Shown: positions 24,212-46,736 of the stretch, in pieces
Position numbering within the stretch: the first letter of the stretch is position 1
Layout: every line of letters begins with the position of its first letter
Sequence record: PV796108.1
Direction: 5' to 3' (one strand)
DNA length: 64,000 bases
The notes under the pieces: generated by a model
Databases searched by the model: none
The model's input: the letters and a program-made list of their open reading frames with translations, nothing else
What the model was told of the DNA's origin: nothing
Program-made: the position numbers and the translations under genes

Positions 24212-27200
24212 TTACTCTTTTTTCTGACCATAATTATCAAGGTCTTCGTAGCTTGTTGTGAACTTACGGTCACTAGCTTCTGTGTCAGCCATGAAGTTCA
24301 TGAATCCACCGACTGCTGCAAAGAATCCGTCGCCTGAGCCATCGAATCCTAGACCTTGTAAGAAGTTATCCATTGAGCCTTGTTTCGTATCACCAACAAC
24401 CATACCTTTATGACCATTAATACCAGCTGTAAACTCTTTACCTTGATGCATTAATGGCATCATCAGTACAGCTTGGTTCGTAGTCTTACTTCGTCTCCAC
24501 TTCTCGAATAAGCTTTCAACTAACCATCCAGCAGTTAAACTGAATATCCATCCAAGTGGTGTCCCTTTCGAAGCAAAGGTTCCGACCCCTTTAATAAACT
24601 TAGAACTTGATTTCATATCTTTCATTGCACCAGGCAATTTAGATGCAGTTAGAAGTGAACGAGCCGCTAACTTTTTCGTTCCTTTCATAATCTTACCATC
24701 CTTACCAGGTACTCCTCCAGATTTTAACCATTCCTGCGCCTTTTTGGAAACATTATCTGCTGCATTTTTTACACGTTCCCAAGCCTGTGCCTCATTCTTA
24801 CCTTCCTTACCTTTTGCTTTATAGTAAGAATCAATAGCCTTTTTCAGTTCATCTGTTTCAGGAGTTTCAGGAAGTGTACTTACAAGGTTCTTCATACTCT
24901 TCTCTACTATCCATCCACCAGCTGCTTTACCTTTGGTCATTAATGTTCGACCTGTTGCACTATTAGCGAACTTACGAGTTGCCGCATTACCAGCACGCAT
25001 TCCCATAACAGTTGCTCCAGCTAACATCCCGATTGATGCCCACCAGTTTGAATGAGCTAACATTGCTTTGTCATCAATAACAACAACTGCATCAGGAGTT
25101 ACACTTGAAATGAAACCAGTCTCATGAGAGAAGTGATGAACAACAGCTTCAACTCCGATGTTACCGTTCATATCAGAAACTGAATCTGACATGTAAATCA
25201 TATCGTGTGGTTTCAATGTAGGTGTTCCAAGGATTGTGATACGTCCTTTATACATATCTTTCATGTAATCACGAACAGTACTTGCAGAGTAGTAAAGAGC
25301 TTGCTTCTCTGTAGTAAACTTATCCCAACCTGGAATTGTACGAGAGATTAATGGAAGGTCAACAACGGCTGTACGTTGCATTGAGAAGTCGATATCGTAG
25401 TCTGCATACACTGGAGGTGTTGGTTTGCCGCCGTAGTTACCAACAACAATTGTGTACATACCATCAGAAGATGCTTTGATTTGGTTAGAGATAATATCCA
25501 TGCCATCATCAATATAATGAAGTTGACAATATGGACGTCTATGCTCTGTATCAAGCGTACGATCCCATGACTTCGTTTTCTCGTTATAAGCATAGGTACT
25601 ATCATAACGATATGCCATATTCCAATATGGTTTTCCGAAGAACAATGTAGAGCGTGTTTCGAATGGATGAACCGCAGCAATATAGTCAGGGAAGCAATAA
25701 GAAATGTTTGTAGCTACATCCCAGATTGTTTGATTATATAGAGGCATCAAGATGTTGTCCTCGTCACCGCCTTGGAATTTAAGAATGAATCCATCCCACT
25801 TCATAGGAATACGAGTACCATCTTCATAAATCCATTGGCTAAATGTTTGAAGCCCGTTTGCAGAGTAAATGTTTTGAGCAGCCTCTCCATAGTTTTCATT
25901 GAAGAACTTGAAGTTAGCATCTGGTGTTCTATCGCCTGGACGACCAAAGTGAGCCACCCCTAATGGATTGTCACGGAAGAATCTATTCTCACTGGCTACG
26001 TTAATTACGTCTTTTGCCCATGCACCTTTAGATGTTAATAACTTACAGATAATGTCTCGTGGTTCTTGAGCATTAAATAGTTTCGCTGTCTTATCGTCAG
26101 GGTCACCAGAGATTACGCTTGTTAATTCTAGTCCGTCACCTTGAGCAACGATAGTGATAATGTCGTTCGTATCCATCTCTGTAATCTTACCGTTGAATAC
26201 AGTTGGTAATCTTCGTACAGATGAGCCATAACCCATTCGCAAGTGAATACGAGCACCAACTTCTAACATCATACTGTTCAATAAATCTGAACGAGCATCT
26301 AGTACTGCATCACTTGGATTGTCTAGTACTAAGTTATCCCAGAAGCTATATGCAAAGCTATCATACATTTCACTTGTTGGTCGTGCTGTTAAGTTACTGT
26401 ATACGTTTGTCATCGAGATAACAGCTGTATCTGCAACTTGTTTTCTACTTCTATGAACATCAATAGATTGGATTGCGTTGAATCCGTAGAAGTTATCCCA
26501 TAGACGATAAGAACCCATCCAACGTCCTTCATCAATAATGAAGAATTGGAACGTAGGGAAAGCACGACATAAGCGACCTCTCATATCATATGACAACATA
26601 TTGTGAGACATTTGAGAGAATGCCTCTTCAGGAGATTGCTGGAATAGTAGACGATTGTATTCCTCATCTTTGATGTCTTCTACCTTTTGTTGGTTTTCAT
26701 AGTTCTTCGATTCTTGAGATTTACCATCTCCGAAAACTTGGTCCCATAAAGAGCCATCTCCACCAAATGTTTTACTCCATCCTAAAGCAAGAAGGTCAGT
26801 TGCCCATTTACCAATTAGCATGTTTGTATTACCGCCAGTCGGAATCTTAACTTGGTCTAGGTAACCTTTTAACTTTCCGTCCTTATGCATCTTCATGTAT
26901 GATTCGTAAATCTTCTTTACTTCACTAGATGATTTCTTCTTCATCTCACTCAGCAATGCCTTTGCCTTTTCCTTGCCGATAACATCCTCAATGATTTTAG
27001 AATCCTCTAAGTCTTTGATTAAAGCATCCTTATCACTTGTTGCTACGTTGACACTGTGTGAAGATTTACCATCAACTAGCTTCATGATGTCAGGGTCTAC
27101 AACTTGTCGTGGAGAACGGTAACGGTTCTTATCTCCGTTATATAAAGACTTCCACACACTCATGATAGAAGGGAATGCACCTTCTTTGATGCTGTCTTTT

Positions 27201-30200
27201 TTCAGCTCACCAATATAGAAAGCAGATAACATGTAATCCCAAGCACGGTATTCAAACTCTTTCTCTTTTGAATCTCTAGCTTTTACATAGAATTTATAGA
27301 TATCATCTACGATTACCTTCAACTGATATTTCCAATCCCATAGGAATCGTTGTGCATCATCTACACTACTTGTAAAGTTTGGAATGTCTACCTTACCGAT
27401 ACCACCGAATGTACCGTTCACATAAGGCTTGCTCATAGAATCGAAGCCATTCCATTTACTTTGGTGATGGAAGAATGCTTTTAAATAGTTGGCAATACGA
27501 GCACGAGTGGTTGGCATAAACTCTTTGTAGTACATACCATTTGTTTTATCTTGTCCAAGTAAAGCAACTAAGTTATCAGTAGGCTTCTTACCTTCACGAT
27601 ATTGTGTATACAGTTTCAAGTGGTCTTCTGGTTCAGCATACGTAAGTTTTGTATGTCCACCTTCAGCTTTGTTTTTGTCATTGTATACGTTGTTGTTTTT
27701 CACCCAACGTCCATCAATTAAAGAGTAAAGTTCTTTATAGAACTCGATTGGTTTTGGAACAACATTCTGTCTCCACTTTGTAAAATCAGCTTCAGTTGAA
27801 CCATAGCCCCATGTCTTCCACTTATCTAATGGAGGAGGAGTATCTATATTCTTTTTCTCTTTTAACCATGTAGCAACTTCAGCATTTGGCTTACCAGTAC
27901 CTTTTGCACCACCAGTAGAGTCTGTTGCATTCTCCGCAGCCTTTTCAGAGTTTGCACCTTGATTATCCTCAGCCCAGTTAAAGACATAAGGAACATAAGG
28001 AGTCTTCTTCTCAAGCGCTTCAATTACATGCATGTTCTCTTTATCTACATCCATTGGGTCTGTAGAAGTAATGTTGGATGACATGTGAACACCAGAAGAG
28101 TCACTGAACTTCATCTCTTTACGTTGTTCTAATTGCTTCTTAACTTCTCCACGGAATGTCCATTTTGTAGAAGCATAGAAGTCAGGGTCAACGTAAACAC
28201 CACCTGGTTTGTTTTTGTACTCTTTAATACCAGCTCCAGTTTTCTCAATGACATCATTCAGCTCTTTGTAAGTTGGTAATTCTAAGTCAGGGTATACTTC
28301 CATTTGGTCCATCTTGTATTCAATGATTGCATCCTGTAGTTTGTAATCTACTGTAGATGAATGTAATTGATCTCGGTCATTTCCATCGAATGCACTCATG
28401 CCTTTTAGTTCTTCTTGGCGACGTTGTGTTTTGTTGAATGCTACTAGAACCATTTCACCTTGAAATCGACCTGGGAATCCTGGCACCGTATTAATATTCA
28501 ATGTTTCAATCATGACACTCTTCACACCGAATAGTTTCATTAATTGATTCTCTATTCCTAAGAACCCAGAAGAAATACCTACACGATAATGACGAGCGAA
28601 CTCATCAATCTTATCTACTAAAGTACGTAGTTTCATTACACCATCTTCTGTTAATTCAAGGTCTAGTTTTACGGCAACATCTTGAGAACCAAGGAACTGC
28701 ATCGTAGGTGATTCACCTGTACGAGTTTGAGCAGAACTGAAAATGTTTTCGTACATAACTTGCATAGAAGTAACCAACATATCCTTTTCAGGAATTGTAT
28801 AGTCAATCATAGATAGTTTTGATTCCGTTACATATACAATGTCACTTAACTTGTTATAACGGTCAATCTCAGTCATTGCCATTTGTTCTGCACGACGACC
28901 TCTTTCAACGATACTCTTCAATGCACCTAAAGATGTTTCTGTTACATAGAAGTAACCAATAGCATCTTTCTCGGACTTCGGTTTTACCCAAAGGTTTTTA
29001 TGCTTCTTCAGTTCCTCACCATTCGGGATAGACCATAAGAAGATTTTAAATGTATCTTTCTTACGGAAGTATCCAGGAAGCTCTGAACCTTCTTCTGCAT
29101 CTACTGGTAATTTACCACGCATGATGTCATGCACTTCACTATCATGTGGAGCAAAGAATTCCGTATCATCAAATACAGCTCTAGCACTTCTATTGTTGTA
29201 CATATCTTGGAACACTTGATGACCTTCTACTAAATCATCAGGGTCTTTAATATCACCATTCTTTTTATGGCGTTGATACTTATCGTACTGTTCAAGAACA
29301 AGTGATGCTTTTTTACCATCAGCAATAACTTTACCTAGTTCACTCTTCTTCGCATCAATCTCCATTCTCATTACATTGATTGGCTTCATTTCACGAAGAG
29401 CAATGATTGCTTCTGCTCGTTGTTCTAATTCAGCTTCATCTGCATGAGAGAAAGAAATCTTATTTGTTAATTGACCAGCGATAGGTTCTAGGAATGTATG
29501 AGCATCATTAGCTGGTTTAGATAAACTACGTTGGTAGTACCATCTCATTAATGGATAGTTAATCGCATCATGCAAACTAACTTCTTGAGGCATGTAAGCT
29601 TCAGAGTTGAATTTCGCTAATGTTAAGTTAGCCATAATAGAATGAGGGAATCCTGGCACTGTCTCTACTGATAAGTTCATTAATGCCACATCATGAATAT
29701 CTAAGATAGTATTAATGTATGCATTATCAATAGGAAGGAAAGGCATCTTCTGGAACTGAGCAATCAATTGGCGTAAACCATCCATTGTGTACTCCATACC
29801 TTCTGGTGTTTTCCAAGGCGTACCATTAATCGCTTCTAAGTCATGGAAATATAATTGAAGATTAATAGATGTACTTGAGAAACCAGTCTTCGTTAAAATA
29901 CTTCCTTTTGTACGAAGTGTCTTAACACGTTCTGTATGAGAAGTTCTGTTCACTTGGATTCCTAATGGAGGAACGGTAAGTAATACATCACCAATACGAA
30001 CACGATGTTGGTTTTGTAGGTCTCCCATCTTTTCTAATCTATCATCTAGTGGTTCTAAGAAGTCTAGTGTATTGTCATACACTTCATCATATTTGATTTT
30101 AACTTCTGACAAGTCCGATTTCTCTTCGTTGTTCTTACCACTTTCTTTAAAGTAGTCGTCTAGCTTCTCGCCAACTGTTCCGCTATCAGGCATATCCTTT

Positions 30201-31171
30201 AATAGTCCAAGGTCTTTATACCATTTCATTACATCGAAACGAATATAGCCTTCGTCATTTACGAACTTCTCATATGGCATACCAAGAGGAGCAGGTGCAT
30301 ATAATGCAGAAGGTTTAGCAAGTAAGCTTTTATTCATATTGATTGCGCTAGGTATTTTGTCACCTTTAAGTACTTCTGATTTATTTACATGTGTTTTGTA
30401 AACAACAGCAACATAACGACCATATACATCTTTACGTGGTTCATGGTTTTCGATTCTATCTACATCGACTACGACAGCCCCAGAACCACTTAACATGTTG
30501 TTCATGTAGTCTCTTGCTTCTTCACCGATCTTGAATGCTTGTTCTTTTGTTACTTTATAGCGAGACATGTACCCAGCATTTCGAGTTGTACCAGATGCTT
30601 CGCCGTGGTCTTCTGTCTCAGGTGCTTGTACACCTACATAACGAATATTAATGCGTTCGCCTTTTTTAACATGTATCCCAATCCATTTACCCGTATCATA
30701 AACAACACCAGAGATTGTATCACCATCTTTTACTTTTACATCTTCTAATACAATGATACCTTCTGATACTGGAGTTTCTTCTGGCGGAGCTGCTAAAGCA
30801 CGAGCCATTAATCTAGGAGCAAATGCAGGTTCTGCTTTCTTATCTTCCCCTATTCTTCCTTGCTCATGAAATGGAGAGTTGGATTCAACAGGTAGCTTTC
30901 TAACTACGTGTGCATGTACATCTATATTCGAAACCTTACCACCTAGTTTTCTTGCGAATCCGTGGCTTCCTTCTGTTTTATTAAATAGAACGGAGATAGG
31001 ATATACTTTATTTTTTGCGGCTACTGTTGCTAAGTATTCGGACAATCTATTTCCAACAGAAACTTCGTTATATCTAAAACGAACTCTTTCTCCATCTACA
31101 TCCAGAGTAAGAAGCCAGAATGACTCTGGCTTCTCTTTCTGAACAGATAGGAGTCTCATTTCATACAACAT
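24212..31171 (-). CDS. ~2319-aa baseplate hub. Domains: N-terminal SNase/thermonuclease, two tube-like domains, degenerate SLT, gp27/gpD-like hub, hydrophobic C-terminus
   Basis: Start moved to ATG 31171 (AAAGGAGG RBS). DGDT at 30716-30727, IRYVGVQAPE and DVYGRYVAVVY give the SNase. IQSIDVHRSRKQVADTAVISMTN...RIHLRMGYG...VFNGKITE gives the hub. Confidence 0.8.
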   Translation of the reverse strand: MLYEMRLLSVQKEKPESFWLLTLDVDGERVRFRYNEVSVGNRLSEYLATVAAKNKVYPISVLFNKTEGSHGFARKLGGKVSNIDVHAHVVRKLPVESNSPFHEQGRIGEDKKAEPAFAPRLMARALAAPPEETPVSEGIIVLEDVKVKDGDTISGVVYDTGKWIGIHVKKGERINIRYVGVQAPETEDHGEASGTTRNAGYMSRYKVTKEQAFKIGEEARDYMNNMLSGSGAVVVDVDRIENHEPRKDVYGRYVAVVYKTHVNKSEVLKGDKIPSAINMNKSLLAKPSALYAPAPLGMPYEKFVNDEGYIRFDVMKWYKDLGLLKDMPDSGTVGEKLDDYFKESGKNNEEKSDLSEVKIKYDEVYDNTLDFLEPLDDRLEKMGDLQNQHRVRIGDVLLTVPPLGIQVNRTSHTERVKTLRTKGSILTKTGFSSTSINLQLYFHDLEAINGTPWKTPEGMEYTMDGLRQLIAQFQKMPFLPIDNAYINTILDIHDVALMNLSVETVPGFPHSIMANLTLAKFNSEAYMPQEVSLHDAINYPLMRWYYQRSLSKPANDAHTFLEPIAGQLTNKISFSHADEAELEQRAEAIIALREMKPINVMRMEIDAKKSELGKVIADGKKASLVLEQYDKYQRHKKNGDIKDPDDLVEGHQVFQDMYNNRSARAVFDDTEFFAPHDSEVHDIMRGKLPVDAEEGSELPGYFRKKDTFKIFLWSIPNGEELKKHKNLWVKPKSEKDAIGYFYVTETSLGALKSIVERGRRAEQMAMTEIDRYNKLSDIVYVTESKLSMIDYTIPEKDMLVTSMQVMYENIFSSAQTRTGESPTMQFLGSQDVAVKLDLELTEDGVMKLRTLVDKIDEFARHYRVGISSGFLGIENQLMKLFGVKSVMIETLNINTVPGFPGRFQGEMVLVAFNKTQRRQEELKGMSAFDGNDRDQLHSSTVDYKLQDAIIEYKMDQMEVYPDLELPTYKELNDVIEKTGAGIKEYKNKPGGVYVDPDFYASTKWTFRGEVKKQLEQRKEMKFSDSSGVHMSSNITSTDPMDVDKENMHVIEALEKKTPYVPYVFNWAEDNQGANSEKAAENATDSTGGAKGTGKPNAEVATWLKEKKNIDTPPPLDKWKTWGYGSTEADFTKWRQNVVPKPIEFYKELYSLIDGRWVKNNNVYNDKNKAEGGHTKLTYAEPEDHLKLYTQYREGKKPTDNLVALLGQDKTNGMYYKEFMPTTRARIANYLKAFFHHQSKWNGFDSMSKPYVNGTFGGIGKVDIPNFTSSVDDAQRFLWDWKYQLKVIVDDIYKFYVKARDSKEKEFEYRAWDYMLSAFYIGELKKDSIKEGAFPSIMSVWKSLYNGDKNRYRSPRQVVDPDIMKLVDGKSSHSVNVATSDKDALIKDLEDSKIIEDVIGKEKAKALLSEMKKKSSSEVKKIYESYMKMHKDGKLKGYLDQVKIPTGGNTNMLIGKWATDLLALGWSKTFGGDGSLWDQVFGDGKSQESKNYENQQKVEDIKDEEYNRLLFQQSPEEAFSQMSHNMLSYDMRGRLCRAFPTFQFFIIDEGRWMGSYRLWDNFYGFNAIQSIDVHRSRKQVADTAVISMTNVYSNLTARPTSEMYDSFAYSFWDNLVLDNPSDAVLDARSDLLNSMMLEVGARIHLRMGYGSSVRRLPTVFNGKITEMDTNDIITIVAQGDGLELTSVISGDPDDKTAKLFNAQEPRDIICKLLTSKGAWAKDVINVASENRFFRDNPLGVAHFGRPGDRTPDANFKFFNENYGEAAQNIYSANGLQTFSQWIYEDGTRIPMKWDGFILKFQGGDEDNILMPLYNQTIWDVATNISYCFPDYIAAVHPFETRSTLFFGKPYWNMAYRYDSTYAYNEKTKSWDRTLDTEHRRPYCQLHYIDDGMDIISNQIKASSDGMYTIVVGNYGGKPTPPVYADYDIDFSMQRTAVVDLPLISRTIPGWDKFTTEKQALYYSASTVRDYMKDMYKGRITILGTPTLKPHDMIYMSDSVSDMNGNIGVEAVVHHFSHETGFISSVTPDAVVVIDDKAMLAHSNWWASIGMLAGATVMGMRAGNAATRKFANSATGRTLMTKGKAAGGWIVEKSMKNLVSTLPETPETDELKKAIDSYYKAKGKEGKNEAQAWERVKNAADNVSKKAQEWLKSGGVPGKDGKIMKGTKKLAARSLLTASKLPGAMKDMKSSSKFIKGVGTFASKGTPLGWIFSLTAGWLVESLFEKWRRSKTTNQAVLMMPLMHQGKEFTAGINGHKGMVVGDTKQGSMDNFLQGLGFDGSGDGFFAAVGGFMNFMADTEASDRKFTTSYEDLDNYGQKKE

Positions 31172-31184
31172 ATGAAAACCTCCT

Positions 31185-37100: not shown

Positions 37101-38732
37101 CCCACCACCAGATTCAGTAGTAGAGAACATCTTATCGTAAGTACGTCTTGCACGGTCTAATCCATATGCAGTTCTATTTCCAGAGTTAGGGTTTGCTAAA
37201 TGAGGAACTTCTTCTGAAGGTTTAAATACTTGATGGAATACACTTTGAAGGTCTGTCTCGCTATCTCTAGCAATGAAGTGAAATAAGTCTGTTTCTAAGT
37301 TACGAAGCAAGATACCACTTTGTTTATTCTCAGAGTTCTTTAATTTACCGCTGAATGTTTTTACAACCTCATACTCAGACTCTTTAGAGATTGGATTCAC
37401 ATTCCCTTTGTAAGCAGGGACCAACTGTTTCTTTTCTGGGTCCCAACGGAACACACCATCATTCGCTCCGCTTTCATATCCTGGCAACCCTGTCATAGAG
37501 AATAACTTATCTCCAGCTTTAATGGAGTTACTATTCCAAGTACCATTCATACGAGTACCAGCATCACTATTTACAATACCTTCTACATTTAATTTATCTA
37601 AGAATACTTTATTAGCTACGTCTACAGTTAAATCCGTATCTTGTAAAGCCATGTGAGTTGCTTGTGCGACTTCACCAGTCATTCCATAGAAGTTTGCTAG
37701 CGTTTGGTTCTTTAAGCCATGCTTAGAACTTAGGTCAGCGAATAAAGAGTTTGCAATAGATAATGTATCGAATGAGTCAGCCTTTTGAATATCAGAAGCT
37801 AAACGATTTAAAGCCATTCTAGTCTTTCTATCTTTCTTAGGTATGCTAGGAACTAACTGGTCTTTAATATAATCACGCATGAAGGGGATATCATATGTGT
37901 TAATATTTTGCCCACCTAGTTTTAATTCTTTTCCATTACGTAATGTATTCAAGAATTCTCTAGCTACTACATGCGGTTCTGTACCATGCTTTACAACATT
38001 CTCGAATCCACGTTTCGCCGCTTTGATTTGGTCATGTGTAAATAAAGTACCTTTCATAGCTTTTTGATCTTTGTTCTGTTTTAAGATGGTAGTCATGTCA
38101 CCATCTTTACGGAAGTATCCTTGTCCGAATGCATCATCTGCTCCGTATAGGATTAAGTCATTCACGGTACGTCTTTCATCATCAGACAAGTTAATGCCTG
38201 TGATATGGATTCCTTTTAGTTTTTCAAAGATATCCATTACATGCTTTTGTTCTTTCTCACCTGGCTTTACTAATAGAGAAAGAGCCTTATCTGTTTTACT
38301 AAATTGAAGTTTACCTGCGGCATCTCTTTCTACCTTTGTTTGACGGAAACCAAACTCTAGAGGTGAGTACCATTCTCCGCCATGAGTACCAATATTCTCA
38401 ATATCGAAGAACGTGAAGATATCTCCAGCCTTCATATTTTGAATCGTTTGGATTGACTTCTGAGCATGGGATTTCGTGCTTGTACTTGGGATATGGATAG
38501 ACTTAAACATATTCATTTGAGAATCAGCAGAGTTTGTCAATATCTTACCGTTGTAAGTAGCCGCTTTGAATAACTCATCAGCACCTGTTGTTCTTGGTTT
38601 CTTTTCTCGTTGAGACATTTGAGCAACAATGTATGATGGGTCAGGGTTAGTATTTTGTTTGATATAAGTATCATGAAGGGGGTCGTATTTAAACTGACCC
38701 CCATTTTTAATTCCCCCTTTATTTTCTTCCAT
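31185..38732 (-). CDS. 2515-aa putative virion single-chain two-barrel RNA polymerase with an N-terminal DEDDh 3'-5' exonuclease and a tape-measure-like C-terminus
   Basis: Exonuclease: FFDIE (D110/E112), GQNINTYD281, H360MALQD365. RNAP motifs in canonical order: TFEG(1255)MSII, GRK1395...R1403, LLDKYSAKMDMSGR, NR1958YPT, AD1996HD1998GD2000. Confidence 0.82.
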   Translation of the reverse strand: MEENKGGIKNGGQFKYDPLHDTYIKQNTNPDPSYIVAQMSQREKKPRTTGADELFKAATYNGKILTNSADSQMNMFKSIHIPSTSTKSHAQKSIQTIQNMKAGDIFTFFDIENIGTHGGEWYSPLEFGFRQTKVERDAAGKLQFSKTDKALSLLVKPGEKEQKHVMDIFEKLKGIHITGINLSDDERRTVNDLILYGADDAFGQGYFRKDGDMTTILKQNKDQKAMKGTLFTHDQIKAAKRGFENVVKHGTEPHVVAREFLNTLRNGKELKLGGQNINTYDIPFMRDYIKDQLVPSIPKKDRKTRMALNRLASDIQKADSFDTLSIANSLFADLSSKHGLKNQTLANFYGMTGEVAQATHMALQDTDLTVDVANKVFLDKLNVEGIVNSDAGTRMNGTWNSNSIKAGDKLFSMTGLPGYESGANDGVFRWDPEKKQLVPAYKGNVNPISKESEYEVVKTFSGKLKNSENKQSGILLRNLETDLFHFIARDSETDLQSVFHQVFKPSEEVPHLANPNSGNRTAYGLDRARRTYDKMFSTTESGGGRWMLERMYAALDALNEGREKVKRGEIRKVDIADYVQNHPNVQRTVGGTPTGLPNSQYRDLLVMEKRLTQEKKVWQTAMQRLDSTMPAVNGFTPFSQNVALRKISQELDERYGSGESRIRMPNGKGFLELQLPGDTTHRIDLSTDATAARNIRSYITKGLDIKENISKNGGVDIGLVKKRLQDVVHHIRRPGASGLTSSEKSQLMRQVSELQHGESPYMIIESMARMMRAEYTHNSSYANHNLDIKDVSSIRKPLVEAYKNPAILDEIIGRGIDSGRASHKTQGKAVDLSDAKFQKALQVHDEALNGLMQISGGNTARGVQTMKAEDVVKQLIHSYSGEGMATQLIYDGHKKTYMLAVMQETVMKEVMGLQPNQIIEHAKVASVPIPLLDENMNVQMPGSTKTGYLKAMRMNGKDILGTPLEQLVDGAVRRAGSTKELIRKGNEQEAHSRLRRQAREATEKFSHNNPYTNAKELTKHDSKRSQVAQRAARSKIDVSGWAEEWYSWYDQRYGFEKELGVKNKYQQIKDKASGSYTSFFENLGMREQRAFHSTIQEFASREKNMYLNAGNVSGEQVLNGIYGTRETSQAYQAFGHYNILAREQMNKTRNYIPLEEREIRSRLQAQGYTSVEIERMIQTSATTTASEALSAPIRMPDGSVVKQKELTGLNVQAVELTDMDIKDRMDAFRKSNPDGYADLVRKYGQGFEKNLTTFEGMSIIDKSLQSVFDTKREKNFTLQRGYSLHKDIENFFRQAEGNDLERDGFRSVRTDSGGWRLEGDVMKNATELETILGGRVNNPGKADHGKLTIGQVSVGQNTNYQAEKAWGDGFHVVGYDPETRKLQTQMIEKTENGRKFLTDANHRITTNFFDRDIFEALGVGNSKAIVTVSDINKGMHGTEIEGQVRLAVDEANRLITNSDMDFKNEAVKKYVLDIKDMTQRIFQIPDADIGMRLEPVQGSNLTVGKLVLNSEHGRIAGPVYGLQQEYDFVKQSSQMLEELAAKAGVINYVAPINRQEKNVNLTLRVADLHKWQDQMGVSTDGKSGLVRWTYKEQEAIVNRTDQILNRKDHTIGKFVRQQISSRSALQNSSNEMTLAEETSGILRAINDHQNTTLQKQGVVQDGDIVIRTGGNIMTDLDPDGTHTAVMKDGHLEISQHAFRDPQFNVATDPEMTKGKLGNYAMTLADPRSLQLQIEGLGEGVDETVGSLMKKNGGTFLLEMPSNSEHQFKDKYVRLMSPGTMQIGTGPEALEMANEVDKRSLGIWRNIKAYQAAPTIENKEAVEQAVDAYKSYLNYMVTGSHGGTLLDKYSAKMDMSGRFHIEGVNMHEKGLAEGDALIGPKQMQRMIAGAEGDIVQSLAPKRHESILTEYNERMTQAGKAKGQEKKRLESLANQFKSERMGEEALEIAKTNGLYGFTNRYPTINKQTNGVLRYLVDDRIESNVMYVGAGTAKVFKADHDGDNGNAVFNHYKASKNHTIDDIRAIHGEMAEVQQGSVPLYNQAAVEMAGDELKHYNSEKLTVGEQIQRDIQKTQDLGELAGWGPKTTRLNEMESLLARTGKADIGVLDNLRQRMQTLTNPTYEALAKKGLMSQDEAYQAMNVLEEFSSKISQDSISSKKISVGALTEEIVKSWGKSLTSDESQYAAKVMEHHGADAVMTEVERRMQTHYQAIEMLKEGVIRPDSVGVEKIRKANDILGIFKTSNPGESMNHYGLDRHLDQLQDLYSLSGNSFTENPHLKGMQSGGTKDTEIVSNIVAGGKYESVPTPHLDNIAANNPQFKKIYDEGVQNFENLISERFSFRDRAIKDSLADTITETPHLSKNTLTEMIGADKGIVRATEAVGEKMSGLAHKMGPGMIGGAIGFGAMWAASALMRSGPTPEAFQEQTEMAPPPPPPVQVSSGPTARVMSNENINISIRAKDAKGMSQQDISKLVHQELSNQTSAQLNMNMNVNDNTQKLDNEWMQTQFANVMGKGFTY

Positions 38733-38744
38733 CCCAATTCCTCC

Positions 38745-41700
38745 TTAGTTAAATACTTTTGTCCAGTTCGTATTCAACTCCTGAATAATCTCACTGGTTC
38801 TATCTTTCATCATGTCGAAACCGACACTAATTATATTGTCATCTTTAGATGGTGAACGTTGAACGGTTACCTGTACATCATCTAGACCTGCTCCTCGAAG
38901 GACTTTCTCAATTCTAGATGAGTTAATCATGTCTCCCATTAAACGTGGTTGCATATCAACAGCATCAACGCCAGAAGCATCTGCTCTCGTTTCATCACTA
39001 CCCCAGAACCCAAACTCTGTAAGTTCCATACCTTCATTACGAACAACCTTTAATTTAATGTCATTCAATGCGGTATCTGCACGCCATCCTTCCCAGTTCT
39101 CACTAGGTAGATAATGCTTTTTAAAGTAGGATTCATTGCTCTCTACTTTATCCATCTTCATTCCCCACTTAGCTTGGAAGAAGCGACGTTCATTTTCAGG
39201 AACAAGTCGAAGGATTTCCTCCCTTTCTTCAGGAGCAGCCTTCATGAATTCTGCAAAGTACTCTCTATCTTTTTTCGGTAGAGAACGGAAAATTTTTGTC
39301 ATGTCACCATTTGGGTCAGCCCCGAATAATGTTGACTCATATTCCGCTTTGTATTGAAGAGCTAGTAACGTATGTGGCCCAATATCAACACTACTTCTAT
39401 CCTCACCAATCGTTTTCAGATTGTCACGGATACGTTTCAATTGGAACTCTGTAAGCTCATCATCACCATAACCCATTTTTTTCTGCATTGCCAATTGTTT
39501 TTTGTAAAGTTCTAGCGTTTTACGAGATTGCTTATTCTGCTTACCACGCTTACTATTCTCGTCCAGAAGTTCTTTTAAATCTACACCTTCTGTACGTTTC
39601 GCTTCTTCAGCTGCTTTCTCATATAAACCTTTGAACTTCATGTATTTCAAACGGTCAAAGTACTCGTTAACTTCCCTTTCCTTCTTACGTCTTTCTGGTA
39701 ACCAAACTTTATCATTGCCAGGAGTGTGTTCACTTAATACTCGAAGAGCCGCCGCCCCACCGCCTACTAAAGCACCAATCCATTTACCATAATATTTACC
39801 TTTACCTCGTCCAGCTAACCAACCAATACCATAACCTTGAGCACTTGCAATTAATGGATTACGAGAAGCCATTGTTTCAATCATAGGTTGTAACCATCCA
39901 GAGATAGGTTCTTCCCATGGTCTCCACGCTTTACCATAGACTTCAGTACGTTTGTATTGTTCTAATGGAGAACGAACTTGTAAGAACTTATCAGCGATAG
40001 GACCGATGATAGGTAAGCTTGGTAATAAGTCATGGCTCAAGAACTCCCATGCTTTACCGACAGTAATTTGGTCATTACTGAATAATGCTTGTGTAGCAGT
40101 TGCACTACCATCATCTTTCACACTTACTTTATTGTCTCCACCAATACCCATAATTCCACCGAAGGAACGATTCGCTAACATGTAGTTGACGTTCTGACCT
40201 TTTTGAGTCATGTAGAACGGCATACCTTCTTCACTATTTCCAGCGTATACAACAGCACGCATTGTATTCATCATGTCATCACGGACACGGAATAGTGGGT
40301 CGGCATCTAATCCTACTCGAATCTTCGCACCTTCATAAACGAACTGACGTAATAAAGACTGAGCTTCTTCATCATCTTGCTTGATAGATACACCAGCTAG
40401 TTTAATAGGGTTATTCGGGAACTCTTCTGTTAAGAATGTATTCTGGTCAAGAATCTTCGTAACAGTTACATCCTGCATATCAATGTCAGCATTTGTGAAT
40501 CGTTTATCAAAGAATTGGTATTTCTTTTTACGTTCACGTACTTGCGTCATTACTTCTTGATACTCATCATTCATCTCTTCTGTTAAACGACCATCTTGGT
40601 TCATTTGGGAAACAACACGTTTCCACATACGATACTGGTCAGAGTATGGAGCAACGTCAGCTAAGATACGGAATCTATCGAATGCACCGTACTTGCTTCC
40701 ATCTTCTTGAGAGAACTCATCTGGATGTAGCTTGTATAAAGATTCATAAGCTTCACCAGGAAGTCTCATTTCACCTTTACTTACTTTTACATAAGGGTCA
40801 CCGTATTTAAATGGTAGGAAGTATTCCGCACCAGGCATCCAGTCTGGCATTGTGTTTCGAATTGGATTGTAGTAATTTTTATTCGGGTCACGAGGAATAT
40901 AACGACGGAAAATCTCGGAGAATCCGCCACCAACCATATCGGCTCCACCTAGCTCCATATCCCAGAAGCTACGAGCCATACTATCCATACGAGAACTTGG
41001 CTCAAGTGTTAATCCACGTCCACCCTCTTGGAATCCAGATAGTGCTTTTGTACCGAAACCGTAGATACCAAGAACCTCAGATGCAGAGTAGAACATATCA
41101 CGAGCTACACCAGATGGATTACCAATCTCACCGATGTCAGCTAAGTCTGCTAGTGCTTCAGGGTCACGTAAGCTTTCTAATTGAGTTAAAGGTCTCATCT
41201 TAGATTGGTTAACTGCTGCTTGACCTCTCATGATGATACGTTGGTTAATTGCTGCTAAAGAAGCACTGGAGTAATCTCCTGTTCCAACCATTCGTTCAGT
41301 TCCTTCAATAGCAACGCCACCTTCAGAACTAGAACCACCACCAAGACCAATGGCACCGCCAGCACCTGAACCATAACCTTCTTCATATCCACCATCACCA
41401 GAAGGCATATCTTCATATACTTGAAGCCCACCAGCTGGCATTAACTGAATACTAGCACCTTCACTATATGCATCAAAACGTCTACTAGATGCTGCAATTA
41501 CTTCATCTTGATAACGTTCATGTTGTTCTTGTAAGTCTGCTCTTACAGTACGTGGAGAAATGATTCGCCCAATTGTATTATCTGCAAGTGGACCGACAAT
41601 AGGGAAGTCAGATAGGATTGTTCCACCTTTAATTGGGTAAGGTCTGTCATCTTCATGCTTCTTTTCTAGATAACTATGACCATTTAACATGTAAGTTAAT

Positions 41701-44700
41701 GGAGCTATTGGATTTGATAATGTAGGAATCCAAGTGTTTGCCCAGTAATCATTTGCACTTCCATAAAGCGTATCAGTGTATTCATAATCACTCTTCGCTT
41801 TACGATACCAGTTTGGTTCCCATCTCTCGATCTTTCCACCAGCCCAAGGAGTATTCGAACCTAGACCCCAGTAACGACCTTTACGTACAGCATCTTCACC
41901 AGATTCATAGTACTTATCTACTTCCTTTTCTGAACGAAAATCAGAGAATGCACCAAGTGTTAAGAAGTCGAATGCCTTTAAGAATGGTAGTTCACCTAAT
42001 TGCCCAGCACCTGCAAATGGAGCAGTTAGTTCTTTACCAATACGATTAATACCAAGTGCTTCTTTTACACCAGCTAAGTCGCCATGCATATTTACATACG
42101 TATCAGCTAGGCTATCACTTACTGTATCTCCAGTCATATCATCAAGGTACTCTAACTCTTTGTAAGCTACATAAGGAAGTAAGATACGTTTCCCTAATTG
42201 GTTTACAAGAATACTTTGCATACTACCTTTGTCTTTTTGAGCAAGACCTAATCCTACTTTGGATAACGCATTATCCATACGTTCAACACCGTAATAGAAG
42301 AATGTAGTAGCTGTCGTTACATCACCAAGGTTATTACGACCAGCGAATGGTTGCTTTACTACTTCTTTCGCACTATTAAGAAATGCAGATACAGAGTTAG
42401 AACCTTCTTCAATTAATTGATTGTAGTTCTCTTGCGCCCATCCAATTCCTTTTGCATCTCGCATGATACCGTAACCTGTTGTCGGTCCGAAATAGTTCGG
42501 CGGTTTCATACCTGGCCCAGTACTTGTTAATGGATTGAACTCTTTAATGCTCTGATGGATAGCTTGACCAAATACACTGTCATCGCCTTTCATCAACCCA
42601 GCGAATTCTTCTAATGCATCGTCACCATACGTATTACGATTACGATAAACATCTTTCCACCATGTACGCATTTTAGAAAGGACTTCCATATTACGTACTT
42701 CACCTAATGCATTTTTCTCTAAATCACCTTCTAGGATTGCATTTCGAACAAGACGGCTTGTACCCTCTGTTGTCATATTGACTTGGTGAATAGAGTGTTG
42801 TTGAATTAAACGTTTTGCATCATCTAAAATACCAACTAATTCTGTTTCACCTGTTTCTAATGCAGAAGCAAACTCAGGAAGAACAGCGCCGTTGTCACTA
42901 GAGATACGCTTATTCTTTAAGAAGCCTTGAGGGGAACGACTAAACTTCGTCCACATTTCATCTAATTGTTCAGCTAATGCCGTATTACCTTTAGAGATTT
43001 TACCATCGAACTCAGGAGAACCAATGGCTTGTCGTAAACGTCCTACTGCACCCATGATTTCATCTGTTGTATTTAATTTTGTTAAATCAATATCAACGTT
43101 CCCATATGCTTTCTTTACATGTGGGTTTAAGAAATCAATTGTTGTACTAGAGAAGTTTGTTGTCTTTTCATTAAATGAACTATATAGGTTCTTATAGATA
43201 CCTTCTACTTCATCTAAATCCTTGTACTGACCTTTCATCATTGTACGAACTTGGTTAATCTCCCAGTCAGGGTCTTTAAATTTCGTAAACATACTCTTGA
43301 TGTTAGCGAAGCTAGATGGGGATTCTTGCATTCCAAATCCAAAGAAGTTCTTTACTGGACCAACATCATCATAGTTTCGTACGTGTAAGTTAGCCATGCT
43401 TGCTGGCATACGGCTGAATACACCGAATCGTCTATCGGCTAGGTAGACACCCTCATCTACTTTATTCATATCATGCATACGGTATACATTTCCACCAACA
43501 AAGATATGGTCGTCTGCTAATGTACCAGCTGCCGCATCTCTATTATGAGCCGCAGGATGCTGTACTGTTCGTGCTCCTTGTAAGAACGGGTCAATATCTC
43601 CACGTTTTAATACGTAGCTTTTAGGAGCTTCACGAATTGTTTTAATACTAGAATAGTGAGCAAGGTCTAATGGGTTGAATCGTAGATATGGTAATTGCAC
43701 ATTGTCTTTTACAATATCAAGGAAGTTTAATCCGCCATCAATACTGTTACGCATATCAACAACGTTACCTGATTTATCTAAGAATAAGCCTGGGTCTACA
43801 TGTAGGTCTCCTAGTTCACTATCAGACTTCATATGGATACGGAAGTTGTTTGCTAAGTTCTTTGGAGCCATCTTGCTAGCTTTTTCTAATGGAACTAAAA
43901 AGTCTGAACTGTCTTGGTCAATCAAACCTCTGTTTAATGTTTCCTTTAATGTCAGTGGTTTTAAACCTCGGCGTTGAGCAGCTTCCATCCATTTACCATT
44001 CTTGTCAACTGAGTGGTCATCCTTGAATGCTTTTACACGGAGGTCACGATATTCTTTGTAGTTCTTTTTCGCAACATCCTTTACATTCTTATCCTTCTTA
44101 ACCGCTGTCATCGTTTGGTAAACTGTCTCTGCTGTTTTCTTACGTTCTAACTCATCAACAAAGTCTAATGCATTACTGATGTTATTCTTTTTCGCATTCT
44201 CTTTTGAATGCATTTTTAATAACTCGTCTACCTTTTTAAGAGACGGAGCTTCATAGAATAAGTCATCACGTTTTTGACGAAGGACATTTTCTAGTCCGCC
44301 TTCCTTCATTCTCTCAGGGAGAACAGAACTTAGTCGTTTCATTGTCTCTTCAAACTGAGTAGAACGTACAAAGTCTTTACGTTCCTTTTGAAGACCCTTC
44401 ATCATAGACAGATATTCATTTTGAATCTTCGTTGGTTTTCCACCAAGAGGAGTTCGTGCCATACGCATTCTCTCTTCTTGCAGGTCTTTAAATGTACGAG
44501 TAAAACGATTATCGAATCTATCCTTATTTCTCATATGGAATAGAGGATTCTTTTGATCTAATGCATGGTCTAATGATTTTAAATATGAACCTACTTCACC
44601 CATTGCATTGCCTACAGGAGTATTGCGGGCTGACATTTTAGCAGCTTGAATAGCGGCTCCTCTCATAGCCATACTAGATTCATGTGTAACTACCTTGATT

Positions 44701-44822
44701 CCTTTACCGATTGCTCGTCTATATTTATAACCTAGTGCTGCACCACCTACTATACCTGCAAGCTCTAAAGGACTGGAACCTTCTTGCTCTGGTAAGGGCT
44801 GGCGTCCAGTTTGCTCTGCCAT
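38745..44822 (-). CDS. Tape measure protein (2025 aa) containing a degenerate SNase-like fold
   Basis: Lies immediately after the tail chaperones; long and mostly helical, with Gly/Ala-rich hydrophobic segments (LAGIVGGAALG; WIGALVGGGAAAL). Confidence 0.75.
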   Translation of the reverse strand: MAEQTGRQPLPEQEGSSPLELAGIVGGAALGYKYRRAIGKGIKVVTHESSMAMRGAAIQAAKMSARNTPVGNAMGEVGSYLKSLDHALDQKNPLFHMRNKDRFDNRFTRTFKDLQEERMRMARTPLGGKPTKIQNEYLSMMKGLQKERKDFVRSTQFEETMKRLSSVLPERMKEGGLENVLRQKRDDLFYEAPSLKKVDELLKMHSKENAKKNNISNALDFVDELERKKTAETVYQTMTAVKKDKNVKDVAKKNYKEYRDLRVKAFKDDHSVDKNGKWMEAAQRRGLKPLTLKETLNRGLIDQDSSDFLVPLEKASKMAPKNLANNFRIHMKSDSELGDLHVDPGLFLDKSGNVVDMRNSIDGGLNFLDIVKDNVQLPYLRFNPLDLAHYSSIKTIREAPKSYVLKRGDIDPFLQGARTVQHPAAHNRDAAAGTLADDHIFVGGNVYRMHDMNKVDEGVYLADRRFGVFSRMPASMANLHVRNYDDVGPVKNFFGFGMQESPSSFANIKSMFTKFKDPDWEINQVRTMMKGQYKDLDEVEGIYKNLYSSFNEKTTNFSSTTIDFLNPHVKKAYGNVDIDLTKLNTTDEIMGAVGRLRQAIGSPEFDGKISKGNTALAEQLDEMWTKFSRSPQGFLKNKRISSDNGAVLPEFASALETGETELVGILDDAKRLIQQHSIHQVNMTTEGTSRLVRNAILEGDLEKNALGEVRNMEVLSKMRTWWKDVYRNRNTYGDDALEEFAGLMKGDDSVFGQAIHQSIKEFNPLTSTGPGMKPPNYFGPTTGYGIMRDAKGIGWAQENYNQLIEEGSNSVSAFLNSAKEVVKQPFAGRNNLGDVTTATTFFYYGVERMDNALSKVGLGLAQKDKGSMQSILVNQLGKRILLPYVAYKELEYLDDMTGDTVSDSLADTYVNMHGDLAGVKEALGINRIGKELTAPFAGAGQLGELPFLKAFDFLTLGAFSDFRSEKEVDKYYESGEDAVRKGRYWGLGSNTPWAGGKIERWEPNWYRKAKSDYEYTDTLYGSANDYWANTWIPTLSNPIAPLTYMLNGHSYLEKKHEDDRPYPIKGGTILSDFPIVGPLADNTIGRIISPRTVRADLQEQHERYQDEVIAASSRRFDAYSEGASIQLMPAGGLQVYEDMPSGDGGYEEGYGSGAGGAIGLGGGSSSEGGVAIEGTERMVGTGDYSSASLAAINQRIIMRGQAAVNQSKMRPLTQLESLRDPEALADLADIGEIGNPSGVARDMFYSASEVLGIYGFGTKALSGFQEGGRGLTLEPSSRMDSMARSFWDMELGGADMVGGGFSEIFRRYIPRDPNKNYYNPIRNTMPDWMPGAEYFLPFKYGDPYVKVSKGEMRLPGEAYESLYKLHPDEFSQEDGSKYGAFDRFRILADVAPYSDQYRMWKRVVSQMNQDGRLTEEMNDEYQEVMTQVRERKKKYQFFDKRFTNADIDMQDVTVTKILDQNTFLTEEFPNNPIKLAGVSIKQDDEEAQSLLRQFVYEGAKIRVGLDADPLFRVRDDMMNTMRAVVYAGNSEEGMPFYMTQKGQNVNYMLANRSFGGIMGIGGDNKVSVKDDGSATATQALFSNDQITVGKAWEFLSHDLLPSLPIIGPIADKFLQVRSPLEQYKRTEVYGKAWRPWEEPISGWLQPMIETMASRNPLIASAQGYGIGWLAGRGKGKYYGKWIGALVGGGAAALRVLSEHTPGNDKVWLPERRKKEREVNEYFDRLKYMKFKGLYEKAAEEAKRTEGVDLKELLDENSKRGKQNKQSRKTLELYKKQLAMQKKMGYGDDELTEFQLKRIRDNLKTIGEDRSSVDIGPHTLLALQYKAEYESTLFGADPNGDMTKIFRSLPKKDREYFAEFMKAAPEEREEILRLVPENERRFFQAKWGMKMDKVESNESYFKKHYLPSENWEGWRADTALNDIKLKVVRNEGMELTEFGFWGSDETRADASGVDAVDMQPRLMGDMINSSRIEKVLRGAGLDDVQVTVQRSPSKDDNIISVGFDMMKDRTSEIIQELNTNWTKVFN

Positions 44823-44837: not shown

Positions 44838-45359
44838 CTAGAATGGGTGATGATGCTGTTGTTCTTTATCTTCTTCTAACTTAACTCCTCGAAGAACTTC
44901 TAATGTCCATTTAGCACGAGAATAGTACCACATTGTTTTCTCTAATCCCCAGTTGTCAATCTCTTCTAATTCAAACTCAGGGAAACAGAACTTAATAATA
45001 CAAGATACTTGATTCTCGAAGCTTCTCATGTCTGCATCAAACTTCATCTCAAGTTCTTTCATTAAATTATTGTCTTTACCGAATCCTGCTTTCTTCAGAA
45101 TTTCTTGACCGACAACGTTTGGAACCCCAGCAGGTAATGATTCTGTATCATCAATTACAGGGTCTAGTAAACATATTCTACAGATTTCATCGTACTTGTC
45201 TGTTTCAAATTCTATTGGAGCAATTCTTTCTTTAAACTCTTTACGAGATAATGGTCGCCATACATATGCATCATCTTCAAACTCTGTCACATATACTTCC
45301 ATGTATTCTTTTATCCATTCATCTCTAATGCGTAAGTACTCTGTTATGTCTTTTGTCAT
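44838..45359 (-). CDS. Tail assembly chaperone, GT-like (G-like domain plus C-terminal extension)
   Basis: YVWRPLSRKEF...AGVPNVVGQEILKKAGF is paralogous to the upstream chaperone, with an extra C-terminal domain; precedes the tape measure gene. Confidence 0.7.
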   Translation of the reverse strand: MTKDITEYLRIRDEWIKEYMEVYVTEFEDDAYVWRPLSRKEFKERIAPIEFETDKYDEICRICLLDPVIDDTESLPAGVPNVVGQEILKKAGFGKDNNLMKELEMKFDADMRSFENQVSCIIKFCFPEFELEEIDNWGLEKTMWYYSRAKWTLEVLRGVKLEEDKEQQHHHPF

Positions 45360-45377: not shown

Positions 45378-45404
45378 AAAAAAGAGAGGGGATTTCCCCC
45401 TCTC
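45378..45404 (-). terminator. Intrinsic terminator between the two chaperone genes
   Basis: GAGAGGGG-GAAAT-CCCCTCTC followed by TTTTTTATTT. Confidence 0.85.
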
Positions 45405-45419: not shown

Positions 45420-45905
45420 TTATAGACGGATAGCGCCTGTTTTTGCAGTGAAACCAGATTTCTCTAAGATAGTGTCAGCTAATACAGTTGGGATACCAGC
45501 TTTACCAGCACGTAATTGTGCGAAGCCGTAACCTACAGGATATAAGATTGCTGTATCACAAATCTTTTCTTCACGGTAGTATTGGTCTGCACCTTGCATA
45601 TTCATTACTGATTTGTACTCAGTGCGTTTAAGTGGGCGCCAGATAAATACTTGGTCGTCGAATTCAACAAGATAAACTTCTTCGTTGAAAGCTGATTTCC
45701 ATTCTTCAACTTGGTTCTCTGTTGGACCACCTGGGAACAATAATTTATTACCGTGTTCATCGACCATTAAGTCTGCTTCGAAGTCTTCTTCAGGTTGAGC
45801 TTCTGGAGCTGGGCCAGCTGTTGGTGCTTCTTCTTTCCACTCAGCCTTTTCTTCGATTTGTTCTACTGCTTCTAATTCTAACTCTTCATTTTTTTTGCGT
45901 GCCAT
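45420..45905 (-). CDS. Tail assembly chaperone, G-like
   Basis: FIWRPLKRTEYK...AGIPTVLADTILEKSGF; acidic N-terminus; lies between the tube genes and the tape measure. Confidence 0.7.
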   Translation of the reverse strand: MARKKNEELELEAVEQIEEKAEWKEEAPTAGPAPEAQPEEDFEADLMVDEHGNKLLFPGGPTENQVEEWKSAFNEEVYLVEFDDQVFIWRPLKRTEYKSVMNMQGADQYYREEKICDTAILYPVGYGFAQLRAGKAGIPTVLADTILEKSGFTAKTGAIRL

Positions 45906-46671: not shown

Positions 46672-46699
46672 TTTATACCTCCTTTTCCTTATCACCGTT

Positions 46700-46729: not shown

Positions 46730-46736
46730 GCGTTTA

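Follow-up and report, generated by a model that had tools for sequence, protein, structure and literature searches.

A predicted exonuclease–RNA polymerase protein encoded in the tail operon of Bacillus phage Edson

Why would the tail operon of a contractile-tailed bacteriophage encode, between a gene in the tape-measure position and the gene for a baseplate hub, a giant protein that resembles a cellular RNA polymerase (RNAP)? The question is raised by the DNA analysed here, a stretch of 64,000 nucleotides (nt; the window, to which coordinates refer unless another record is named). Its sequence matches Bacillus phage Edson (PV796108, 233.8 kb), a contractile-tailed jumbo phage, at 100% identity, and all genes in the window lie on the minus strand. 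Three consecutive giant genes, here termed g1, g2 and g3, fill 20.6 kb of it (lengths in amino acids, aa):

38745..44822, minus strand: g1 (2025 aa), gp145-family virion protein in the canonical tape-measure position
31185..38732, minus strand: g2 (2515 aa), predicted exonuclease plus single-chain β/β′-type RNA polymerase
24212..31171, minus strand: g3 (2319 aa), baseplate hub protein

The gaps between them measure 12 and 13 nt, each gene has an AGGAGG-type ribosome-binding site, and neither the g1/g2 nor the g2/g3 junction contains a terminator-like hairpin. We placed the start of g3 at the ATG that follows AGGAGG; the program-made list of open reading frames (ORFs) begins this gene at 31240. 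An initial annotation had described three giant genes in a row with 12–13-nt gaps and no intervening terminator, and the ORFs, the hairpin check and the GenBank record of Edson, which annotates g1, g2 and g3 as the identical three coding sequences (CDS), all agree with it. The 20.6-kb stretch is 91% identical to B. cereus phage vB_BceM_WH1 (WH1). Together, g1, g2 and g3 form the centre of the tail/baseplate operon in a jumbo myovirus belonging to the 0305phi8-36 lineage.

Domain architecture and conservation of g2

Structural models and family profiles indicate that g2 is a single-polypeptide RNA polymerase of the cellular (β plus β′) two-barrel type with an exonuclease in front. Its parts are as follows:

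37608..38450, minus strand: residues ~95–375, DEDDh (DnaQ/RNase T-type) 3′–5′ exonuclease, assigned from the family profile against the PDB and an invariant pentad
33783..37385, minus strand: residues ~450–1650, module resembling the second-largest RNAP subunit (β/Rpb2), assigned with AlphaFold2 and Foldseek
31683..33782, minus strand: residues ~1651–2350, module resembling the largest RNAP subunit (β′), assigned with AlphaFold2, Foldseek and the family profile
32733..32861, minus strand: residues 1958–2000, catalytic signature R-Y-P...D-H-D-G-D, with residues invariant in family alignments
31188..31565, minus strand: residues ~2390–2515, conserved C-terminal module with a low-confidence fold

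Standard single-sequence searches with g2 alone were blank against Pfam, PHROGs, NCBIfam and the PDB (phmmer), and its family is without a model in Pfam, PHROGs or NCBIfam. A phmmer search of 1.84 billion cluster representatives with residues 1316–2515 retrieved 112 proteins (clusters at 50% identity), of which 77 are full length (median 2453 aa, interquartile range 2384–2477). The full-length relatives are 16–35% identical, and mean column identity within the family is ~22–26%. Matches by tblastn among 50,697 phage records were confined to Edson, WH1 and Bacillus phage KLEB27-3, whose orthologue shares 27% identity with g2 over 98% of the length. A scan of viral contigs for related loci returned no relative.

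The catalytic signature is strictly preserved in this divergent family. Exactly one R-x-P...D-x-D-x-D occurs in each of the 77 full-length relatives, 74 of which have the D-x-D-G-D form. Arg1958, Pro1960, Asp1996, Asp1998 and Asp2000 are invariant in alignments of 47 and 78 sequences, and Gly1999 is 96–97% conserved; further residues that never change are Gly2103, Asn2107, Gln2150, Ile2153, Ser2154, Lys2156, Ala2442 and Asp2491. The g2-family profile matches phiKZ gp055 (7ogp_A, E 3.8e-4) and the β′ subunit of phage AR9 exactly across R-x-P...D-x-D-G-D. The Pfam family RNA_pol_Rpb1_2 matches g2 weakly (E 0.18) and one relative more strongly (E 1.6e-4).

Two AlphaFold2 models, both built on family alignments, cover the polymerase. 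The model of residues 1316–2515 (m3809628ab848) has a predicted local distance difference test score (pLDDT) of 76.6 and a predicted template-modelling score (pTM) of 0.71. When it was compared with the PDB by Foldseek, the best 50 matches were all largest-subunit chains (β′/Rpb1-type, mostly bacterial β′), headed by AR9 chain 7s01_d (E 2.5e-5), with 168 matches at E<=1e-3. The model of residues 450–1649 (m42944843bfcd; pLDDT 78.7, pTM 0.64) gave the complementary picture: its best 50 matches were all β/Rpb2-type chains, from bacteria, plastids, archaea, Pol I/II/III, vaccinia and African swine fever virus. The best of these was 6dcf_C (E 9.6e-5), and the 50 ranged from E 1e-4 to 2e-2, with probabilities of 0.72–1.0 and 540–1200 aligned columns. 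An independent BFVD model of the WH1 orthologue superposes on the g2 model with a template-modelling (TM) score of 0.83. The initial annotation had called the middle protein an exonuclease, RNA polymerase and tape-like protein. Profiles, Foldseek matches and invariant residues now place the first two parts on firmer ground than it had claimed; the tape-like part was not recovered. Residues 450–2350 are predicted to form well-packed globular RNAP-like domains (pLDDT 77–79, pTM 0.64–0.71) with no long unbroken helical ruler. We found no hydrophobic membrane-type segment (KD19 >= 1.6) in g2, and no peptidase or tape-measure match in Pfam, PHROG or NCBIfam.

The exonuclease was recognized in a similar manner. 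Positions 241–373 of the g2-family profile match exonucleases in the PDB, including 9l8b_A (E 8.6e-6), the PolC exonuclease 2p1j_A, exonuclease I and TREX1, and the alignments to 9l8b_A and 2p1j_A span Exo II–III. Pfam RNase_T matches one g2 relative at E 7.8e-6, and a faint precomputed match exists on the relative P0057. The pentad Asp110, Glu112, Asp281, His360 and Asp365 is 100% conserved in 43 relatives and follows the DEDDh order, with Asp110/Glu112 as the D-x-E of Exo I, Asp281 as the aspartate of Exo II and His360/Asp365 as the H-x4-D of Exo III. Judged by these residues, the N-terminal DEDDh 3′–5′ exonuclease of g2 is intact.

A DEDDh domain is typical of DNA-polymerase proofreaders, and the PDB matches include the exonuclease domains of PolC, Pol delta and family-B enzymes. 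This raises the question of whether the two-barrel part could be another kind of template-dependent polymerase, either RNA-dependent or, like archaeal PolD, DNA-synthesizing, with the exonuclease as its proofreader. Two-barrel enzymes do include RNA-dependent and DNA-synthesizing members (PMC9508822, PMC7281927). We nevertheless regard this explanation as very unlikely: among the polymerase matches listed, all are β or β′ subunits of DNA-dependent RNAPs, aligned over hundreds of residues, and none is QDE-1 or PolD. The D-x-D-G-D form and the preceding R-x-P also fit transcription enzymes.

The C-terminal module is the best-conserved stretch relative to the KLEB27-3 orthologue (56% identity), and many database fragments match this module of g2 only. 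Its pLDDT is below 50 over most of its length.

Delivery with the virion: proposal and precedents

We propose that g2 is a virion-borne RNA polymerase, encoded in the tail operon, that starts phage transcription in the host, and we hold this account to be fairly probable. Specifically, we infer virion incorporation, a tail location, ejection, transcription of early genes and a role for the exonuclease, in the following order. g2 would be made late, together with the tail proteins, and would be built into the virion, probably via the conserved C-terminal module, in association with the tail or hub. It would then be delivered into the host along with the phage DNA and, without needing the host RNA polymerase, would transcribe the first phage genes, after which phage sigma factors would redirect the host enzyme to later genes. 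The exonuclease may trim transcript 3′ ends or attack host nucleic acid.

The closest known system is gp96 of Thermus phage P23-45, a virion RNA polymerase fused to a tape measure (Chaban et al. 2024, PMC10770324). Its proposed function is to enter the cell together with the DNA and carry out transcription of the earliest genes (PMC10770324), and it provides a plausible direct precedent for the entry of a virion polymerase with DNA. gp96 and g2 are both giant tail-module proteins; in each, the RNAP is of the two-barrel kind, has a D-x-D-G-D loop and escapes ordinary sequence searches. They differ in several respects. P23-45 is a non-contractile siphovirus, and its polymerase lies at the N terminus of a 5002-aa protein that also contains membrane and metallopeptidase tape-measure parts. 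In g2, the polymerase follows the exonuclease and fills nearly the whole protein, with no membrane or peptidase parts, and tape-measure parts on the polymerase polypeptide, as in the gp96 type, were not encountered. Unlike P23-45, Edson has a contractile tail and carries a separate giant gene in the tape-measure position. Finally, g2 resembles a full β plus β′ pair rather than a minimal two-barrel core.

Virion polymerases fused to giant proteins also occur in crAss-like and N4-like phages (PMC10770324). These podoviruses have the basic concept in common with the model proposed for g2, in that a polymerase resides in a giant virion protein and is ejected to start transcription. N4 uses a T7-like polymerase, not a two-barrel one, whereas that of the crAss-like phages resembles QDE-1; each is packaged in the head of a podovirus without a tail tube. 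To our knowledge, neither the N4 nor the crAss virion RNAP carries a fused exonuclease. The multisubunit RNAPs of phiKZ and AR9 provide the best sequence-profile and fold matches for the β′ part of g2 (7ogp_A, 7s01_d, 7s00_d), and one enzyme set of these phages is packaged in the virion. Their subunits are spread over four or five polypeptides whose genes lie outside the tail module, whereas g2 joins its β-like and β′-like parts to an exonuclease in one chain and is encoded between the tape-measure-position gene and the hub gene. The papers we searched make no mention of the g2 family; the supplementary survey of PMC10770324 includes neither WH1 nor KLEB27-3, and a literature search for these two phages found no paper.

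Several points weigh against our proposal. The TM-scores of the Foldseek PDB matches are low (0.1–0.25 overall, 0.15–0.25 for the β-like module). Such values are expected because these are multi-domain proteins whose domain arrangement differs, and it is the uniformity of the match lists that carries the argument. Neither the g2-family profile nor Pfam produced a sequence-profile match to RNAP β, so the β-like assignment derives from predicted structure. Within that module, Lys1395 (>=90% conserved) and position 1403 (91% Lys or Arg) lie in a β-strand domain with pLDDT ~90 and are tentatively considered a candidate basic active-site pair of the β-type barrel, as an unverified lead. Lys1591/Glu1592 form a second candidate cluster. 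Template-dependent RNA synthesis by g2 is a predicted activity. Outside the core motif, the hhalign comparison of g2 with YonO-like enzymes is insignificant, and P23-45 gp96 does not appear among the listed PDB matches of g2. As to location, the place of g2 in the Edson virion or tail is putative, and a folded polymerase of ~2000 residues cannot sit in the lumen of a tail tube; it would have to be unfolded there, or be housed in the head or baseplate.

These last points favour a different explanation, in which g2 is an unpackaged polymerase expressed from a late operon and acts in the infected cell, for example in late or replication-coupled transcription or in priming. Its presence in the virion is suggested by the GenBank labels of two orthologues ('virion structural protein' in WH1, 'structural protein' in KLEB27-3), which may themselves derive from gene position; the available mass-spectrometry evidence concerns gp146 of phage 0305phi8-36, the positional counterpart of g2. 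An enzyme of 2500 aa is, moreover, hard to fit into a tail in folded form. On the other hand, g2 is packed between two genes for virion proteins with gaps of 12–13 nt and no promoter or terminator signal, and this position is kept across very distant relatives. A polymerase made only with the late structural proteins would have little left to transcribe. In addition, g2 has its C-terminal module in common with gp146, a proven virion protein. We therefore consider an unpackaged enzyme improbable.

Comparison with phage 0305phi8-36 and the tape-measure question

Phage 0305phi8-36 has the same layout as Edson, with three giant genes, gp145-gp146-gp147, after a two-gene chaperone. The gp145 protein (1930 aa) is a virion protein by mass spectrometry. 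The middle protein, gp146 (2537 aa), was seen by mass spectrometry and named a 'hypothetical tape measure protein', and gp147 is the hub (PMC2147016). The two middle proteins are nearly equal in length (2537 aa for gp146 and 2515 aa for g2). Nevertheless, only the last ~60 residues of gp146 align to the g2 family (hhalign E 1.8e-4, 59 columns); gp146 contains no R-x-P...D-x-D-x-D and is not detected by the g2-family hidden Markov model. We thus rejected gp146 as a full homologue of g2. When Hardies et al. compared gp146 with its counterparts in prophages, they observed the same pattern (PMC2147016).

The correspondence in position implies an alternative function for g2: it could be the tail-length ruler, as gp146 was annotated, with the polymerase either an added domain, making a dual ruler and RNAP, or a relic. 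P23-45 gp96 demonstrates that ruler and RNAP can be combined in one protein (PMC10770324). The length of g2 is strikingly constant across 77 relatives, and its C-terminal module is the one found in gp146. Constant length, however, is explained equally well by a fixed domain architecture, and residues 95–2350 are taken up by predicted, confidently packed globular enzyme domains, with no long helical or hydrophobic segment of the tape type. The usual place of a tape measure, beside the chaperone pair, is taken by g1. In Acinetobacter jumbo phage ME3, both the middle protein (1603 aa) and the g1 counterpart (1263 aa) are shorter, so both scale. The strict conservation of the catalytic residues speaks against a relic. 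A ruler function for g2 therefore appears unlikely, and g1 is favoured as the tail-length ruler on the basis of its position and the globular nature of g2.

In tblastn, g1 is 36% identical to 0305phi8-36 ORF145 over 52% of its length, and homologues are also present in Moorella phage MTATph1, KLEB27-3 and ME3. There was no domain match to g1 in Pfam, PHROGs, NCBIfam or the PDB, and a g1-family profile retrieved nothing meaningful from the PDB. With regard to the initial designation of g1 as a tape measure, g1 has the expected place after the chaperone pair but no family match. A dead staphylococcal-nuclease (SNase) fold, which had been claimed for the same protein, could not be confirmed, as the library and PDB profile searches were blank and hhalign gave a weak hint (residues 1472–1556 against the SNase region of the hub; E 0.014, probability 3%). 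In two loci, the g1 orthologue is split into two ORFs: in KLEB27-3 (locus L003, 8722-15875; 1340 + 677 aa) and in a 106-kb metagenomic contig (locus L007, 2627-9954; 1461 + 529 aa). One small ORF, of 211 aa in KLEB27-3 and 248 aa in L007, lies between the pieces at a similar relative place, which suggests a recurrent mobile insertion, for example of the homing-endonuclease/intron type.

Edson-type phages and 0305phi8-36 also differ in the remaining transcription genes. 0305phi8-36 encodes a separate YonO-like polymerase, gp99 (orf99), and a tblastn search for a YonO-like gene in Edson, WH1 and KLEB27-3 found none. Across 222 kb of the 230-kb WH1 record (all but the last 7.6 kb), the annotated genes include two sigma factors but no further RNA polymerase. 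Because g2 and YonO-like gp99 show a complementary distribution, the idea that g2 is the phage's own polymerase gains support.

YonO, gp99 and QDE-1-type RNAPs resemble g2 in being single polypeptides that contain both barrels and R-x-P...D-x-D-x-D. They are small (~840–1220 aa), however, and are devoid of the extended β plus β′ architecture of g2. We considered g2 as a YonO-type enzyme and rejected this assignment, as hhalign covered 54 columns round the motif at E 0.16. The Pfam family RdRP (PF05183) had no match in g2 or in the relatives tested, and BFVD entry A7KVB1, an unnamed 1218-aa protein taken to be gp99, matches the g2 model at an E of only 0.02.

The restricted similarity between gp146 and g2 could be rationalized if the position occupied by the middle gene, after the tape-measure-position gene and before that of the hub, were a cargo slot, in which a short C-terminal module serves as a loading or attachment tag and the passengers differ by lineage. 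The passengers would be the exonuclease-coupled RNAP of the Edson type, a shorter version with D-H-D-Q-D in ME3 and the unrelated 2537-aa protein of 0305phi8-36. Both the slot and this list of passengers are speculative, and we consider them doubtful. The initial annotation had compared the tail to cargo loading in extracellular contractile injection systems (eCIS) and had suggested a payload for host takeover or anti-defence, a plausible but hypothetical role. The C-terminal module common to otherwise unrelated middle proteins is the only lead toward lumen cargo of the kind known from eCIS and type VI secretion systems (T6SS).

P23-45 and the N4-like, crAss-like and phiKZ-like phages carry RNA polymerases in their virions, which lets them begin transcription without the host enzyme. 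If our assignment is correct, g2 represents a large RNAP family of at least 112 clusters at 50% identity that curated libraries have missed. Its members would combine both large RNAP subunits and a DEDDh exonuclease in one chain, encoded in the tail operon of contractile-tailed jumbo phages (Bacillota, Acinetobacter). No earlier two-barrel RNA polymerase would have had a DEDDh editor built in, and g2 would serve as a compact model, in a single chain, for RNAPs of the cellular type. The assignment also affects how the middle giant gene of the 0305phi8-36 lineage, called a 'tape measure' in 2007, is to be read. If g2 is indeed injected, the contractile tail would be a protein-injection device for a transcription machine, which poses the question of how a 280-kDa enzyme travels with or through a tail.

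The hub, flanking genes and related loci

The initial identification of g3 as the hub held up well. By tblastn, g3 is 33% identical to 0305phi8-36 ORF147 'baseplate hub protein' (residues 387–2085), 33% identical to the hub of MTATph1 and 40% identical to the KLEB27-3 'putative baseplate protein'. The gp147 protein holds a T4 gp27-like domain (PMC2147016). Thus, g3 has homology to a recognized hub and occupies the hub position. PHROG 20474 matches residues 1518–2270 of g3 (24212-26620) at E 1e-216. This PHROG is labelled 'endolysin', yet the C-terminal third of g3 contains no Pfam lysin domain; the label seems to be inherited from hubs of the 0305phi8-36 gp147 type.

The N-terminal part of g3 contains a nuclease-like domain:

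30302..30682, minus strand: g3 residues ~164–290, SNase-like domain with an oligonucleotide/oligosaccharide-binding (OB) fold, assigned with Pfam, NCBIfam, PHROG and a structure profile

Pfam SNase (PF00565) scores 26.5–28 bits against a cut-off of 21 (E 9e-6), covering only profile positions 1–60 of 107. Calcium-activated nuclease EcnA is the NCBIfam match (E 2.8e-7), with a score that falls well short of the equivalog cut-off; PHROG 452 'endonuclease' also matches, and a profile of eight hub relatives aligned to thermonuclease structures at E 1.2e-3. Edson g3 keeps equivalents of thermonuclease Arg35, Glu43, Tyr85 and Arg87, with Asp40 replaced by Gln and Thr41 by Ala. One metal ligand is Gln or Asn in the Edson, KLEB27-3 and MTATph1 hubs, and the arginine and acidic positions are lost in two metagenomic homologues. 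The near-intact SNase that had been reported for the hub is therefore a fair description of Edson, where four of these residues are kept, but does not extend to those relatives in which the site is degenerate. Because of this degeneracy, we doubt that an endonuclease 'payload' is a general property.

The nuclease-type domains of the module could be structural leftovers and not weapons for delivery, with the OB-fold a building block of the hub or spike and the exonuclease serving the polymerase in transcript 3′-end editing instead of attacking the DNA or RNA of the host. We give this a chance slightly short of even. The variable degeneracy of the SNase site and the match to only 60 of 107 Pfam positions point in this direction, as does the fusion of exonuclease to polymerase in every relative, which is how a cooperating domain would behave. 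Conversely, the Edson hub has retained the four thermonuclease equivalents and the exonuclease pentad is invariant, so that both nuclease domains could act on any substrate.

Upstream of g1, the gene order is a capsid gene, two sheath paralogues, three tube-like paralogues and two small chaperone-position genes. The sheath genes bear out the contractile tail of the initial annotation. Downstream of g3 lie an SLT/M15 hydrolase, an NlpC/P60 protein and baseplate wedge genes. The genes next to the giant trio are:

45420..45905, minus strand: chaperone-position gene 1 (161 aa); the WH1 orthologue is labelled 'tail chaperonin gp098', and its PHROG matches are all of unknown function
44838..45359, minus strand: chaperone-position gene 2 (173 aa), directly upstream of g1; the WH1 orthologue is labelled 'tail chaperonin gp097'
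22923..24194, minus strand: SLT transglycosylase and peptidase M15-like cell-wall hydrolase (423 aa); Pfam SLT E 8e-8, Peptidase_M15_2 E 3.5e-3; the WH1 orthologue is annotated as an amidase
21609..22910, minus strand: NlpC/P60 peptidase protein (433 aa); Pfam NLPC_P60 E 6e-7

The two chaperone-position genes occupy the same place as orf143/144 of 0305phi8-36 (PMC2147016). A GC-rich stem followed by a T-run (45387-45400, minus strand) lies in the 60-nt gap between them. No other good hairpin of the terminator type occurs near the module, and this one might reduce the transcription that continues into the giant genes. Farther upstream, 45931-47936 and 47995-51681 hold the tube-like paralogues, three in tandem (254, 190 and 191 aa), and the pair of sheath paralogues (547 and 483 aa), which flank a gene of 218 aa. 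PHROG 9206, to which the tube paralogues match, is labelled 'major head protein'. This label is probably wrong, because KLEB27-3 annotates the orthologues as tail tube.

The synteny search recovered the giant-gene trio in WH1, KLEB27-3, ME3 and metagenomic or metagenome-assembled-genome contigs of 106 kb and 38 kb. The recurring layout consists of a chaperone pair, a protein of ~2000 aa, a D-x-D-G-D protein of ~2400–2600 aa and a giant hub, with the following sizes, to which those of the shorter ME3 version are appended:

KLEB27-3: first giant split, middle protein 2434 aa, hub 2326 aa
Short metagenomic contig: first giant 2006 aa, middle protein 2410 aa, contig ending early in the next gene
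106-kb metagenomic contig: first giant split, middle protein 2486 aa, hub >3400 aa with amidase/M23
Contig of assembly GCA_016294925.1: first giant 2204 aa, middle protein 2608 aa, hub 2462 aa
Acinetobacter jumbo phage ME3: first giant 1263 aa, middle protein 1603 aa, hub 2329 aa

The ME3 middle protein is the best non-trivial BFVD fold match to the g2 model (E 1.2e-7). This protein, ME3_36 (locus L016, 13173-17984), is annotated as hypothetical and is a shortened, 1603-aa polymerase relative with R-E-P...D-H-D-Q-D and no detectable exonuclease match; it extends the module to a Gram-negative host. The next BFVD fold match, at E 1.7e-7, is the 'minor tail protein' of an uncultured siphovirus, which hints at further tail-linked polymerases.

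In MTATph1 (locus L005, 10174-17530), a single insertion, which includes a transposase gene, interrupts the g2 counterpart. The piece upstream of the insertion aligns to the exonuclease-bearing N-terminal part of the g2 family with a probability of 98.4% and has ~800 extra N-terminal residues before the exonuclease-like region. A metagenomic locus with an SPbeta-like context (L008, 9355-15423) encodes a 2022-aa protein with D-F-D-G-D at residue 1136. Its gene adjoins YomU/YomV/YomX-type tail genes just upstream of a PhageMin_Tail gene, and its relation to g2 is weak and limited to the catalytic loop and its surroundings (E 5.8e-4). This protein, too, may be a giant polymerase linked to a tail. 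In WH1 (locus L018, 22124-26322), the annotation divides DNA polymerase III alpha into three CDS that are separated by gaps, which suggests intervening elements, either introns or inteins, in the replicase gene.

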